Shown: piece after piece, positions 2,122-7,849 of the stretch
Layout: every line of letters starts with the position of its first letter
How positions within the stretch are numbered: position 1 is the stretch's first letter
Sequence record: NC_074653.1
Length of the DNA: 18,212 nucleotides
Reading direction: 5' to 3' (one strand)
Made by a program: the position numbers and the translations under genes
The notes under the pieces: generated by a model
Databases searched by the model: none
The model's input: only the letters and a program-made list of their open reading frames with translations
What the model was told of the DNA's origin: nothing

Positions 2122-3045
2122 ATGTCTCAAAGACTCATCTTCTTTTTGAGCGCGTTTTCAATTGTCTATTTCACGCTCTTTAGCGGAAACCTATACCTTG
2201 ATTTAGTCATGTGGTTTATGGTTGTCATCTCCACCATATATGCGGCCGAAATATCCATGGCTTTATCTAATGCACGGCTGTGGTATAACGTCTTAGTCGT
2301 TTCTATGGCTATGTCATTGCCTCAGACCTTATTTGCCATAAAGCTAGCCAGCAGCGGGAAATATCTAGCTTCATGGATAGACACGCTGGGGTCCACGCTT
2401 GTTGACGCTATGCTAGTGACAGCTGTCCTTAGGAGGTACGTTATCGGCTCTCCCATGATATGGAATATGGTACCATTCTTGATAATGTGGTCCATGGCGG
2501 CTCTTTATGTCAACTATCACGCTTATGCTATCACCTACGGCCTTTTCAGACTCCCTGAGTGGGTGATAGTGGTAATTGGTATACTCCTCCCAATGGTCCT
2601 AGTGAGGCCCACGGGACTACCCCGTAAGAGCGAACTCATCATGTTGTTACTACACGCAGTTTCTACTGGGGTGTCCTCATACCAACTGTCCAATGTAATT
2701 GCGCAATTGCCTATCCATGAAATACAGCTAGGAATAGTGGCCACCATCCTTGCCACACTGCCAGACTTCTTAGTGGCCCTAATTATACGGAGTGCTGTGG
2801 CGAAAATCCTCAACGAGGTGGCCTCCGAGGAGGAGGCGTTAGCCACAATGCTAGCGTCCGCGGTTCACGACCAAATACTTATCCCAGCGCTAGTACTCAC
2901 ATTGTACCCGGAGGTGGCCGCTTACTATCCACACTATTTCAATGTCATAATTATCCTCCTCAAATTCACGCTGTTATTCCGCAATGTCTACTGGCTATTC
3001 GGCGTACCCTTCACCATCTTCTTGTTGTTAATGCCTCCCGTGTAG
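2122..3045 (+). CDS. CaCA-family (Na+/Ca2+ exchanger-like) membrane transporter (307 aa)
   Basis: Polytopic hydrophobic protein with two alpha-repeat-like motifs: SLPQ...LGSTLVD and TLPD...LASAVHD. Start moved from 2044 to ATG 2122, which avoids overlap and sits 25 nt after TTTTAA. Confidence 0.75.
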   Translation: MSQRLIFFLSAFSIVYFTLFSGNLYLDLVMWFMVVISTIYAAEISMALSNARLWYNVLVVSMAMSLPQTLFAIKLASSGKYLASWIDTLGSTLVDAMLVTAVLRRYVIGSPMIWNMVPFLIMWSMAALYVNYHAYAITYGLFRLPEWVIVVIGILLPMVLVRPTGLPRKSELIMLLLHAVSTGVSSYQLSNVIAQLPIHEIQLGIVATILATLPDFLVALIIRSAVAKILNEVASEEEALATMLASAVHDQILIPALVLTLYPEVAAYYPHYFNVIIILLKFTLLFRNVYWLFGVPFTIFLLLMPPV

Positions 3046-3260: not shown

Positions 3261-3710
3261 ATGCCAGTAAAGACCATAGGTTTCGGCGTGTTATATATCC
3301 ATAGGGAGTGTCCTATATGCCTCTCCATATTCCGCCTTGAGACTATAAAGAAGGCGATTAATACACCAGCAAAAATGAGGTTAATCATAAAAGACGTTGA
3401 AAGCCTCTCCTCTGAGGAGAGGCTTAGGCTGTGGGGCTATAGGCTTACTGAATATGGAATAGTACACCGCGTGACGGTTCCATTGTTAGTAATATATTGC
3501 GTTGACGAAACAACAGGTGAGTGGATACCTATATATAAAAAGGAGTGGAGGCCTCTAATGGGACCCTTTCTGTCCGAGGCCGATATAAGAGAGATGTTAG
3601 CTTTAATAACATCTTTTCAATGGGAGTGTGTGCGAAAAAGCGGTAGCCATATTGGAGAATCTGGAGAAGAAGAAGTCCAAAGGAAAGCTAGAAAAAGACG
3701 AAATTCTTAA
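3261..3710 (+). CDS. Thioredoxin/glutaredoxin-fold protein (149 aa)
   Basis: CPIC (C17-C20) after a hydrophobic strand, and the cis-Pro-like motif TVPLLVI (P74). Confidence 0.65.
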   Translation: MPVKTIGFGVLYIHRECPICLSIFRLETIKKAINTPAKMRLIIKDVESLSSEERLRLWGYRLTEYGIVHRVTVPLLVIYCVDETTGEWIPIYKKEWRPLMGPFLSEADIREMLALITSFQWECVRKSGSHIGESGEEEVQRKARKRRNS

Positions 3711-3719
3711 GGCGTTTAA

Positions 3720-3983
3720 ATGAGGCAATGCAATACACCGCAAGAGGCAATTGACGTAGTCTATAACAATATTTTCCACTTTGCCAATGGATACGCTGTG
3801 ACAAGAGATGTGGCCGAATGCCTCATTAAACTCAAATTAGCATTATTGCTCTTAGCTCTTGACACGGGCCACATGTTGGATATACAATACTCTAATTTCG
3901 TGATACGCTGTGAGGCTTACTACTGTTATGTCCCTCCCTCCATTTATGAAATCTTACGCTATATGAAAATGCGCCTTACCTAG
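3720..3983 (+). CDS. Hypothetical protein (87 aa)
   Basis: ATG 9 nt after the upstream stop, non-overlapping, 4 Cys. Confidence 0.75.
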   Translation: MRQCNTPQEAIDVVYNNIFHFANGYAVTRDVAECLIKLKLALLLLALDTGHMLDIQYSNFVIRCEAYYCYVPPSIYEILRYMKMRLT

Positions 3984-3995
3984 TTATCATTAGAA

Positions 3996-4003
3996 TTATA
4001 AAC
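3996..4003 (+). promoter_or_regulatory. TATA box
   Basis: TTATAAAC starts 26 nt before GTG 4022. Confidence 0.6.
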
Positions 4004-4021
4004 GCATATTTTTTCGGTGTT

Positions 4022-4726
4022 GTGAACACTGTTATCGCTGATAGGGTAAGCGGGAAATTTGTTAAAGGGCGTGTGGCCCACGATAAATGGTGCATAGGCC
4101 GCGAAATTGAATACTGGCTAGGTTTTCAGTTTAACTGTTATCCCATTACGCCCTCAAGATACGCCACGGTAATGAGGGTACTTAAACCGATTATGGGAAA
4201 CCTTTTCGGTGTAGGTTATATATTGCCAGACACCATTAGGCTGGTAAGCCGCACGGTTGTGGTATTTCACCCTAGTGGTGCGGAAATTGAGGAGGTTTTA
4301 TATGACGTGAGGCTTGACGCTGAGGGTATAATTGTGGGCGATTCATTTTACCCCGTTCAATGGGCGGAAAACGCACTATCGTGTAAGGACAGCGGCTTCA
4401 GTACAATATGCGTGACTTTTGGGGCCCTAGTGAGGGTGGGCGATAAGTTGAAACATGTCCCACTATACACTGAGGTTGAATACCGCGAATACATTAGGGC
4501 TTTAGCCACCAAGTCAAAGGATATCAAGCCTTGGGAGACAATATTGGCGAAACTTTTTGTCTATGAGAACTTCATAAATCAGCTTGTGGAAGAGCTTTCT
4601 AAGCTAGGTGAGATGCGTCTAGCGGAATACGTGTCTTCTCTCAGCGCACAATTTAGGAGAATTCTCGAGGCCACTGAGAACGTCAAGGTGATAACGTCAC
4701 CACAACAACGTGAAGAGAAGCGATAA
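4022..4726 (+). CDS. Hypothetical protein (234 aa) with beta-rich N-terminus and helical C-terminus
   Basis: Long ORF with its own TATA box. No motif recognised. Confidence 0.85.
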   Translation: MNTVIADRVSGKFVKGRVAHDKWCIGREIEYWLGFQFNCYPITPSRYATVMRVLKPIMGNLFGVGYILPDTIRLVSRTVVVFHPSGAEIEEVLYDVRLDAEGIIVGDSFYPVQWAENALSCKDSGFSTICVTFGALVRVGDKLKHVPLYTEVEYREYIRALATKSKDIKPWETILAKLFVYENFINQLVEELSKLGEMRLAEYVSSLSAQFRRILEATENVKVITSPQQREEKR

Positions 4727-5515: not shown

Positions 5516-6424
5516 GTGTCCGAGGTACTCCCTTTAGCCAAATATGGCATATACATTTTGTTAGCGGCAATACCACCTCTTGACGCTTTTGTTTTCGGCA
5601 CAATGGCTGTGTCATTAGGTGTATCCGACAAACCGTATCTGGCTATAATCCAGGGAATTGCGGTGGCGGCTATTGTCTACTCACTAGCTAAGGAGAGCTT
5701 CTTACGTGGCATTGCGGCCGCACTAGGCGCTATAGGCAGCGCTGTCATTACATTAAATGTCACTGACATATTCCTGCAGGCCTTTGGACAGTTTTTTGGT
5801 ACAGTTGTCACTTCACTAATTGACATGGCTCTCAAAGGCCTATTCCTAGGCATTGCGGCTGGGGTGGCACTTGCGCTATCGCCTCTCTCATTGCTTTCTA
5901 TTATCACGGGCTTCATTTTGGCGCTCTTAGTTCAAATAGTAATGAGGGCTATAGACCTCATCGAAAGTGCATTGGAAATAGTCACTCACGCCCTCTTTAA
6001 GGGTATGCCTGTGGGAGTAATGGCTCTTTTAGCGCCTTACTACGGAGGTATAGTAATCGCACTACCGCTAGCTTTCGCTATTGTTATTTTCCTCACCCTA
6101 GTGGCGATAGCCATAGGCATTGCAATTGGGATAGCTATAGTGGCGATAGTGCTATCATGGACCGTGGTGTTCACGATTTTAGGATTCGTGTCACTACTAC
6201 TGTTTATCGCTGGGGTATCCCTAGCGGCGCTTCTAAAGCCAGTGAAAGCCTCACTTATGTCCCCCCTCATAGACACGCTAGTATTACTCATATTCCCTTA
6301 CCTAGGTCCAGCGCTATACACTAGTGGATACGCGGGCCTCCTGACAAGGAAAAGGGCGCTAGGCCTCTACCTAATCGGATTAGGACTATTCGGCGCAGTC
6401 CTACCAATAAAATTGCCTTTCTAA
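5516..6424 (+). CDS. Polytopic membrane protein (302 aa)
   Basis: Almost entirely hydrophobic (A/G/I/L/V). TATTAAAC starts 27 nt upstream. Confidence 0.85.
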   Translation: MSEVLPLAKYGIYILLAAIPPLDAFVFGTMAVSLGVSDKPYLAIIQGIAVAAIVYSLAKESFLRGIAAALGAIGSAVITLNVTDIFLQAFGQFFGTVVTSLIDMALKGLFLGIAAGVALALSPLSLLSIITGFILALLVQIVMRAIDLIESALEIVTHALFKGMPVGVMALLAPYYGGIVIALPLAFAIVIFLTLVAIAIGIAIGIAIVAIVLSWTVVFTILGFVSLLLFIAGVSLAALLKPVKASLMSPLIDTLVLLIFPYLGPALYTSGYAGLLTRKRALGLYLIGLGLFGAVLPIKLPF

Positions 6425-6426
6425 GC

Positions 6427-6446
6427 TTTTATAGTCTAGTATAAAA
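6427..6446 (+). promoter_or_regulatory. Imperfect palindrome, candidate operator
   Basis: TTTTATA-GTCTAG-TATAAAA. Its core at 6430-6443 is 12/14 identical to the palindrome at 12418-12431. Confidence 0.45.
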
Positions 6447-6447
6447 C

Positions 6448-6765
6448 ATGAAGCCGAAAACCAAAAACTCACCCACGAAAAGAGGGAGAGACGTAATCGT
6501 GATAATCAATGAGAAGAAAGGCCTAGTGTGCGCGATAACCCCAGAGGAAGGCCCTAGGGAGGAAATTAAGAGGTTTTTAGAAATTGCACAAGACGTAGTG
6601 CTGAGAGCCTGGGTTTATGGGTGGCTTAAGAAAAACTGTGACTCATGTGGGAGGCGTATCAACGGCGCCGTTGCCGTGGCGGTTAAGGACTTCATGGGCG
6701 ATAATGAGAAGGTAATAGGGGTGAAGTGTGGTAGGTGCGTTGACGTTGACGCGGTGTGTAAATAA
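6448..6765 (+). CDS. Zn-ribbon/Zn-finger protein (105 aa)
   Basis: CDSC...CGRC pairs and a basic N-terminus. Confidence 0.75.
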   Translation: MKPKTKNSPTKRGRDVIVIINEKKGLVCAITPEEGPREEIKRFLEIAQDVVLRAWVYGWLKKNCDSCGRRINGAVAVAVKDFMGDNEKVIGVKCGRCVDVDAVCK

Positions 6766-6784
6766 TTCCCTCTTTTTTTTCTTT

Positions 6785-7114
6785 GTGAAGTGGATAACCC
6801 ACATTTTATATGGTGTCCTAATAGGGGAATACCTAGGGGTCCCCCTAAGCAATTCCTTACCTCTCTCCGTGACCCACACGGTGCTGACAGACCTCCTAGG
6901 TCACCGCGGCCTTAGGAGGGCCCCATGGCATGGCTTCCTATCGCTGGCATTAGGCATATTACTATCTATGAATAATTTGATATACGGCATTGCCTTAGGC
7001 TTAACGCATATTCTCCTAGACATTATATCCCCAGGGCGCTTAGCGGTTTCGCTGTGGTATAATTTGCCTTTTATTGCAGCGGCTATTCTCCTACTAGGCA
7101 TAAATCTTATATAA
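6785..7114 (+). CDS. YdjM/DUF457-like membrane-bound metal-dependent hydrolase (109 aa)
   Basis: From GTG 6785: KWITH, DLLGHRG, PWHG, THILLD...G, matching the YdjM His/Asp pattern. The track start at 6728 runs through a T-tract and overlaps the upstream gene. Confidence 0.6.
   Translation: MKWITHILYGVLIGEYLGVPLSNSLPLSVTHTVLTDLLGHRGLRRAPWHGFLSLALGILLSMNNLIYGIALGLTHILLDIISPGRLAVSLWYNLPFIAAAILLLGINLI
7107..7114 (+). promoter_or_regulatory. TATA box overlapping the upstream stop codon
   Basis: TTATATAA ends in the TAA stop of the 6785 gene and starts 26 nt before ATG 7133. Confidence 0.6.
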
Positions 7115-7132
7115 CTGGACTATATTGGACAC

Positions 7133-7849
7133 ATGCGTAAAATACCTATCCCGCTGTTAGTGGCCGCGCTAGTCGGTGTGACAGCTGTTGTTGTAACATT
7201 GCGGGTGACGGTGGTACCTATCCCCGTATATGCAGACCCTAACTTTACGGGACCAATACCTGCAAATATTGGTTCCGCATATTGGAAAGGCGGGTTCACT
7301 GAGGCCCAATTCTTTGCAAATACCACAGTGGATTACAGGTATTTCTATGGGGCCGCTATCGCGGTCTATGCGCCCAAAGGTATTCCTAACGCCACCATCG
7401 TTCGCAATTCTTACGTTAACAATTTAGGCGACTTTATTCAGTTCATTAACTTAACCTCAGGCGTCTACTTAGTCACCTACTATCCAGGTGGCTATTATAT
7501 TGTCGTGAAGTTAGTACCCACTGGGGTTAATGGTTTTTACATAGGACAAGCGCTCAACACTAATGAAATCCAAGTGGTAAATAAGATCAACACAAATGCA
7601 CATTATACGCTGACTGGGAGTGGCTATGACGCCACAAGTGGCAAATTCTTTGTTGCCTACCTAAGCGATACAGGCTCTTCGAATACAATTCTCATGCCTG
7701 CGGCGGGCCAAGGTACTAGCAATACCTTCACTATCAAAGGCTATGACGTATCTCTCAATGTCAACGGCGTCCCTATAGTGGTGAGATACGTCACGGGCGT
7801 GGCTATAATTCCCAGGTCTGACACTAAAGTCACAATTTACGTAAGGTAA
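7133..7849 (+). CDS. MRxIPIPL-family anchored surface protein, paralog 1 (238 aa)
   Basis: MRKIPIPLL plus a hydrophobic helix, beta-rich Y/T/N/G ectodomain, sequons NFT, NTT, NAT and NLT. Confidence 0.85.
   Translation: MRKIPIPLLVAALVGVTAVVVTLRVTVVPIPVYADPNFTGPIPANIGSAYWKGGFTEAQFFANTTVDYRYFYGAAIAVYAPKGIPNATIVRNSYVNNLGDFIQFINLTSGVYLVTYYPGGYYIVVKLVPTGVNGFYIGQALNTNEIQVVNKINTNAHYTLTGSGYDATSGKFFVAYLSDTGSSNTILMPAAGQGTSNTFTIKGYDVSLNVNGVPIVVRYVTGVAIIPRSDTKVTIYVR

Follow-up and report, generated by a model that had tools for sequence, protein, structure and literature searches.

A CaCA-fold membrane protein with conserved, noncanonical ion-site residues in Pyrobaculum spherical virus 2 and other globuloviruses

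Among the exchangers of the CaCA superfamily, ion coordination is described in detail for the archaeal NCX_Mj (MJ0091), where S51, E54, S77, N81, S210, E213, S236, and D240 are among twelve ion-coordinating residues. In this protein Ca2+ is bound by both E54 and E213, and changing either one to Ala (E54A or E213A) lowers kcat/Km 25- to 50-fold; N81, located between E54 and E213 at the central site Smid, can be replaced by Ala with a wild-type-like outcome, and D240 is believed to carry a proton (PMC4753433). The equivalent of E54 in NCX1 is Glu113, and there the E113Q change abolishes Na+/Ca2+ exchange entirely, E113D being inactivating too, while the plant MHX proteins, which are Mg2+/Zn2+:H+ exchangers, all carry a Gln (Gln112) at this very position (PMC3679957). 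In the second alpha-repeat, Asp is the norm in eukaryotic NCX and NCKX proteins (GTSVPD or GTSIPD), and NCKX keeps a carboxylate of the D240 type (PMC8366772). Here, we compare with these systems the product of ORF03 (PSV2_gp03) of Pyrobaculum spherical virus 2 (PSV2), a member of the Globuloviridae whose host is Pyrobaculum arsenaticum and that comes from a neutral hot spring in Italy. The window analyzed, 18,212 bp, is the complete PSV2 genome (100% megablast match to MN876845.1 / NC_074653.1), and its record labels PSV2_gp03 a "hypothetical protein." Baquero et al. (2020) had described ORF3 as a transporter resembling cation exchangers (HHpred, 95.5%), so that the CaCA assignment is already published and the basic annotation is not new. 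What is new is the set of residues fixed in the putative pocket across the whole family (Q/D/D/D plus a His), the parallel with MHX, a sister group that retains the Glu, and a link between the gene and the structural module.

That ORF03 is a CaCA-fold protein is virtually certain, on grounds of both fold and homology. The AlphaFold2 model, built from a 29-sequence alignment (mean pLDDT of 84 and pTM of 0.82), contains 11 long helices. When it was compared with 48,161 PDB representatives using VIA-align, seven CaCA chains (NCX1, NCLX, CAX_Af, NCX_Mj, YfkE, CAX1, and VCX1) matched with Z scores of 16.8 to 19.2 over 268 to 289 aligned residues at 4.2 to 4.8 Å, against a Z score of 8.7 for the best unrelated chain, the unrelated matches being helical proteins. 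Foldseek gave the same picture, since the top 18 PDB matches were all CaCA (probability of 0.98 to 1.00, TM scores of 0.40 to 0.60), with CAX-family structures as the best ones. The model shows the ten-helix core made of two inverted five-helix halves, and its last ten helices are arranged as in NCX_Mj. The alignment begins at residue 1 with the CAX chains and at residue 20 with NCX_Mj; the protein therefore has, in front of the ten-helix core, one additional N-terminal helix like that of CAX proteins. The first-pass annotation had proposed a virus-encoded CaCA protein from the letters alone, a proposal staked on the inverted-repeat fold appearing in a model, and the fold is indeed there.

At the level of sequence, the connection to the superfamily runs through an intermediate group. 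We refer to the viral ORF03 family as A1 and to a PF01699-annotated sister family (P0098, P0099, and P0101 to P0104) as A2. A profile search with A1 against 1.84 billion representative proteins found 17 proteins in all, and the most remote full-length matches were P0098, P0099, and P0101 (E values of 4e-8 to 4e-4), all of them with PF01699. Comparison with hhalign identified A2 as the nearest sequence relative of the viral family (probability of 98.2%, E value of 4e-14, 213 columns) and joined A2 in turn to a canonical CaCA set made up of Escherichia coli YrbG and eight TIGR00367-positive Thermoproteota proteins (probability of 94.5%, E value of 8e-8, 275 columns). The merged viral profile matched the canonical set with an E value of 3.5e-4 over 270 columns. 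A language-model search placed 98 of the 100 closest Atlas clusters in Na_Ca_ex (score of 0.91). Other searches were less productive: the shape search of the ESM Atlas with ORF03 was uninformative (unrelated transporters only, TM score of <0.4), the PHROGs scan returned only phrog_33563, whose function is not annotated, none of 88 ORF03 homologs had a precomputed Pfam match, and the PDB sequence search gave nothing relevant with the A2 profile and one spurious match only with P0099 alone. The N- and C-terminal halves of the viral family did not resemble each other significantly in hhalign (E value of 0.17). The two alpha-repeats that the first-pass annotation described as recognizable are thus so by means of CaCA profiles and structure and not by comparison of the protein's own halves.

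All the alignments agreed on a single register for the ion site. In the A1-A2, A2-canonical, and merged-canonical comparisons, PQ68 falls on PE, S91xxxD95 on SxxxN, TLPD215 on SLPE, and xxxHD250 on SNIxN/D, and the distance of 27 residues between Q68 and D95 equals that between E54 and N81 in NCX_Mj. Since the direct profile match is weak, the register rests on these transitive profile comparisons, on the agreement of the structures, and on the motifs being equally spaced. Conservation was counted over 92 full-length homologs with 28 to 88% identity to PSV2, and the resulting correspondence with NCX_Mj is given in Table 1 together with the coordinates of all features. Three carboxylates are still found at the equivalents of E54, N81, E213, and D240 (Q68, D95, D215, and D250), although one of them has shifted from transmembrane helix 2 (TM2) to TM3, and a fourth acidic residue, D87, is found near the entrance. 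The alpha-2 motif ATLPD215 fits the alpha-repeat signature G(T/S/N)SxP(E/D) with its acidic residue, while the alpha-1 motif xSLPQ68 lacks the acid, so the carboxylate pair of the NCX/YRBG type (E54 plus E213 or Asp) is missing in 92/92 homologs. The invariant residues are N56, S61, P67, Q68, D87, S91, T92, D95, and R104 in alpha-1 and G204, P214, D215, R223, M243, A247, H249, D250, and Q251 in alpha-2; T92 lies next to S91, and H249 and Q251 flank D250 on either side. Out of 27 positions kept in at least 91 of the 92 sequences, 20 fall in TM2-3 and TM7-8 (hypergeometric p = 5e-5). Judging by this alignment, the pocket is under strong purifying selection, and buried charged residues kept so strictly argue for a working ion site.

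Table 1. Coordinates of the features discussed and residue correspondence between NCX_Mj and PSV2 ORF03 (nucleotide positions refer to the window unless a contig is named; counts are over the 92 homologs)
Feature	Location	Strand	Remarks
ORF03 / PSV2_gp03 / ORF03-307	2122..3045	+	annotated coding sequence, 307 aa, CaCA-fold membrane protein, 11 predicted helices
Alpha-1 repeat region	2278..2433	+	residues 53-104, TM2-TM3 equivalents; model helices H53-77, H81-103
Q68 codon	2323..2325	+	replaces alpha-1 Ca2+-ligand Glu (NCX_Mj E54, NCX1 E113); Gln 92/92
D95 codon	2404..2406	+	opposite NCX_Mj N81 (TM3); Asp 92/92
Alpha-2 repeat region	2719..2904	+	residues 200-261, TM7-TM8 equivalents; model helices H200-226, H233-261
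D215 codon	2764..2766	+	opposite alpha-2 Glu, NCX_Mj E213; Asp 92/92
H249-D250 codons	2866..2871	+	D250 opposite NCX_Mj D240 (TM8); both 92/92
NCX_Mj A47	PSV2 S61		Ser 92/92
NCX_Mj T50 (backbone ligand)	PSV2 M64		variable
NCX_Mj S51	PSV2 S65		Ala 48, Ser 33, Thr 10 of 92
NCX_Mj N73	PSV2 D87		Asp 92/92
NCX_Mj S77	PSV2 S91		Ser 92/92
NCX_Mj A206	PSV2 T208		variable
NCX_Mj T209	PSV2 A211		Ala 88/92
NCX_Mj S210	PSV2 T212		Thr 88/92
NCX_Mj N232	PSV2 T242		Thr 86/92
NCX_Mj S236	PSV2 S246		Ala 78/92
VP2-x-VP1-CaCA-ORF15-like module	L065 4559-6922; L071 1813-5986; L072 1714-5957		one strand, short gaps
Viral CaCA-like remnants	L030/L031 (G009:C1:943771-943980); L029/L032 (G011:C114:3202-3428)		
TATA-box-like element TATTTTTTAA	2093..2102	+	directly after ORF02 stop, ~25 nt before ORF03 ATG; read from sequence
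ORF09	5516-6424	+	302 aa

The first-pass annotation had spoken of a rewired site, setting S65/Q68, S91/D95, T212/D215, and S246/D250 against S51/E54, S77/N81, S210/E213, and S236/D240 of NCX_Mj. All eight viral residues are at the quoted positions of the translation, the NCX_Mj residues agree with the PDB chain sequences, and the substitutions with respect to NCX_Mj are real. The idea has to be narrowed on two points, since the change from Glu to Asp in alpha-2 is ordinary in eukaryotic NCX and NCKX proteins and neither S65 nor S246 is conserved.

With exchangers of the NCX_Mj/YrbG type, ORF03 has in common the ten-helix core (268 residues of NCX_Mj aligned at a Z score of 17.3) and the helix-breaking motifs xSLP(E/Q) in TM2 and xTLP(E/D) in TM7, as well as, with NCX_Mj, the Ser of TM3 (S77, here S91) and the Asp of TM8 (D240, here D250). 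It differs from NCX_Mj at five site positions (E54 to Q68, N81 to D95, E213 to D215, N73 to D87, and A47 to S61), in the additional His249, in the extra N-terminal helix, and in a TM7-TM8 loop that exceeds those of NCX_Mj and YrbG by about 8 to 9 residues and is modeled with a pLDDT of <50 at residues 228 to 231. CAX proteins (YfkE, CAX_Af, VCX1, and CAX1) also have eleven helices and align with model residues 1 to 305-307 (Z scores of 16.8 to 17.6), but their signature GNxxE(H), present in both repeats, is replaced by xSLPQ and ATLPD in ORF03. NCKX and eukaryotic NCX proteins have the alpha-2 Asp, and NCKX also a carboxylate at the D240 position; unlike ORF03, they have Glu in alpha-1 and Asn opposite N81, together with large regulatory loops.

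The natural Gln at the alpha-1 ligand position is found again in plant MHX, and by analogy this family shows that such a Gln goes with altered cation selectivity and not with loss of transport. The MHX proteins are eukaryotic, exceed 500 residues, and have a large cytosolic loop, and the likeness is convergent and confined to this one position rather than a sign of close kinship. Closest of all is A2, in which SxxxD in TM3 (SAVFD), TSLPD in alpha-2, and the invariant HD of TM8 (CIIHDF) are all present, although its members are somewhat shorter (277 to 320 aa) and every one of the six has the canonical alpha-1 Glu (TTLPET). Because A2 already has SxxxD, TSLPD, and HD but retains this Glu, the change from Glu to Gln is the feature specific to the clade that contains PSV, PSV2, and TTSV1.

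Orthologs of ORF03 were found in all three isolated globuloviruses, that is, PSV (gp03, P0029), PSV2, and TTSV1 (L064; BFVD Q647F8), the last with 43% identity and a TM score of 0.89. They also appear on dozens of hot-spring contigs and were present in every related metagenomic contig examined, all of which carry other globulovirus genes as well (e.g., VP1, VP2, ORF15, ORF18, and ORF19). As far as these genomes and contigs go, the CaCA gene is a hallmark of a wider globulovirus-like group, within which the Gln variant marks the clade including the three isolates, infecting Pyrobaculum and Thermoproteus. Outside this group, the BFVD search provided, besides the TTSV1 ortholog, a single viral protein with the fold, a Na/Ca exchanger-domain protein of Terrestrivirus (TM score of 0.60, probability of 1.0). 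It comes from a giant eukaryotic virus, is 439 aa long, and is only 11% identical to ORF03, and its gene was presumably acquired separately. The earlier remark that such transporters are rare in small viruses agrees with this result.

The surroundings of the gene vary. In PSV and PSV2, it follows the gene of an AAA+ ATPase, and in TTSV1 the ORF02-like match is about 1.6 kb from it and on the opposite strand. Three contigs belonging to a distant clade with high GC content (L065, L071, and L072) have the CaCA gene within the structural module, which reads VP2 - x - VP1 - CaCA - ORF15, x being an unknown protein of ~311 to 322 aa in L071 and L072. In PSV2, about 8.5 kb separate the CaCA-like gene from VP1. 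The contigs that carry A2 genes (L068, L069, L004, L005, and L007), which bridge the viral and canonical sequences, are rich in ORFans and have VP1-like genes in those examined for VP1. In L068, with all genes on one strand, the CaCA gene is immediately followed by a VP1-like gene (region 6160-7285), and in L069 a VP1 homolog was matched with an E value of 2.6e-10 (regions 3340-4173 and 6991-7158). L068 also contains an ORF15-like stretch and a phage-integrase gene. The A2 contigs seem to come from viruses that are distantly related to globuloviruses and not yet described, and some of these may integrate.

Regarding function, we lean, with slightly better than even confidence, toward ORF03 being a working ion-coupled exchanger of noncanonical selectivity that operates in the membrane of the infected cell, possibly also in the virion envelope, during chronic infection. 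Globulovirus infection is chronic, non-lytic, and noncytocidal. Transport activity, the ions transported, the location in cell or virion, and the biological role are what we infer for the protein. It would exchange cations by alternating access across the membrane of the infected cell, or possibly the envelope, with a preference shifted away from Na+/Ca2+ and plausibly toward a divalent cation against H+. A shift in selectivity is suggested because NCX1 with the same replacement of Glu by Gln loses Na+/Ca2+ exchange, and because Gln is natural in MHX. By the same analogy, classic Na+/Ca2+ exchange is unlikely, and our best guess is an altered cation preference, perhaps for a divalent cation in exchange for H+, which the His-Asp pair H249-D250 would suit.

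Several results weigh against a working exchanger of this family. The NCBIfam scan assigned ORF03 to no family, and the curated CaCA models, TIGR00367 included, do not match it; PDB sequence searches with ORF03 and with the family profile found no match, and the direct hhalign comparison of A1 with canonical CaCA was weak (E value of 0.027). The pocket residues, D95 among them, were placed by the register and not by side-chain geometry, and none of the RNA runs searched for the ORF03 sequence contained it. Every member of the family (92/92) lacks the carboxylate of alpha-1, which is one of the two principal ligands of Ca2+, and ORF03 could be transport-dead, because this same change kills exchange in NCX1. 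The latter point favors the strongest alternative, which we nevertheless regard as unlikely, namely that the CaCA scaffold has been reused as a non-transporting membrane protein of the envelope, the budding site, or assembly, the conserved polar residues holding a structural ion or serving helix packing or the binding of a partner. Along with the inactivity of NCX1 E113Q (PMC3679957), the location of the gene inside the structural module of L065, L071, and L072 and beside the VP1-like gene of L068 would be in keeping with such a role. However, three or four invariant buried Asp residues plus a His are costly in the core of a membrane and are typical of working ion sites, the Gln of MHX is compatible with transport (PMC3679957), and the major virion proteins VP1 to VP3 are the products of other genes.

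A further alternative, which we find improbable, is that ORF03 exchanges Ca2+ for Na+ or H+ in the conventional manner, D95 standing in for the lost alpha-1 carboxylate and the rewiring being nearly neutral. The count of carboxylates would allow this, three being left at the four positions (Q/D/D/D versus E/N/E/D), as would the central place of N81 between E54 and E213 in NCX_Mj (PMC4753433) and the sister family A2, which keeps the Glu and already has Asp at the N81 position. Yet NCX_Mj binds Ca2+ through both E54 and E213, with a 25- to 50-fold loss upon mutation of each (PMC4753433), NCX1 tolerates little change here, being inactivated by E113Q and even by E113D (PMC3679957), and the fixation of Gln in all the homologs, without reversions, suggests selection for a different property and not drift. 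Least probable, to the point of being very doubtful, is an uncoupled leak or uniporter dissipating a host ion gradient for host modulation or superinfection exclusion: the site is altered and a chronic, non-lytic infection makes long-term manipulation of the host plausible, if only indirectly, but in an infection that is chronic and noncytocidal a constitutive leak would do harm, there is no sign of an open pore in the model or in the conservation pattern, and to our knowledge no CaCA member acts as a channel. The leak channel, superinfection exclusion, and budding roles that had been suggested for ORF03 are pure speculation.

Returning to a working exchanger, a more specific version of it, which we likewise hold to be improbable, would place ORF03 in the envelope. 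There it would set the ionic milieu of the virion, loading or unloading divalent cations or protons for the condensation or release of the superhelical nucleoprotein core, in a parallel with influenza M2 in which a secondary-active transporter would be used. Gene order is the only reason for raising it, that is, the VP2-VP1-ORF15 module in one clade and the VP1-like neighbor in the sister group. If ORF03 were such an envelope exchanger, the change from Glu to Gln seen in the terrestrial Pyrobaculum/Thermoproteus clade would have adjusted which ion is carried.

As for its origin, a divergent CaCA-like gene was detected, by way of a Pyrobaculum metagenome-assembled genome (MAG), in 26 of 29 genomes of the host family, Thermoproteaceae. 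The 20 ORFs from the host-family loci that were fetched read SSPE, GSIVAQ, ATVIPE, and IVGE, i.e., E/Q/E/E at the four key positions, versus Q/D/D/D in the viruses. Host homologs sharing the viral substitutions would have undone the first-pass interpretation, and these do not share them. The local hhalign comparison of the viral family with the host CaCA-like proteins was not significant (E value of 0.084) and aligned alpha-2 of the viruses to alpha-1 of the host. With different site residues and no significant profile similarity, a recent capture of ORF03 from Thermoproteaceae was rejected. The host protein itself (L003 1333-2337; L008-L027) has ~310 to 400 aa, carries Gln and Glu opposite N81 and D240, respectively, and scores 25 to 51 bits, far under the TIGR00367 cutoff of 180; its gene often adjoins one for a ~300-aa protein that resembles a cation-diffusion facilitator in sequence (putative). 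Two Thermoproteaceae genomes carry what is left of the viral CaCA-like gene, short pieces with an internal deletion that cover only residues ~62 to 125 and 265 to 305 (Table 1) and that may be traces of past integration; according to the ICTV profile, globuloviruses do not integrate.

In the PSV2 genome, a longer reading frame for ORF03 with a GTG start at 2044 was discarded, as it would overlap ORF02 and the N termini of the homologs favor the ATG at 2122. Because its placement fits the usual crenarchaeal promoter layout, the element TATTTTTTAA upstream of this ATG is a possible promoter of ORF03's own, from which a leaderless mRNA would be produced. ORF09 is the other many-helix membrane protein of PSV2 and has a homolog with 30% identity on a Pyrobaculum MAG contig (L002); it was rejected as a paralog of ORF03 (BLASTP E value of 1.4).

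This analysis refines a known assignment and provides hypotheses that can be tested; it does not reveal a new kind of system. The functions of globulovirus proteins are almost unknown, and a family-wide gene that can be traced to a well-studied transporter superfamily is therefore a rare entry point. With its strict conservation in these viruses and a sister group in which the Glu is retained, the Q/D/D/D+H pocket amounts to a natural experiment on CaCA selectivity. Every examined member of a family of small enveloped viruses has a secondary transporter, encoded in one clade within the structural module, which hints that the chronic, non-lytic cycle of these viruses involves the handling of ions.

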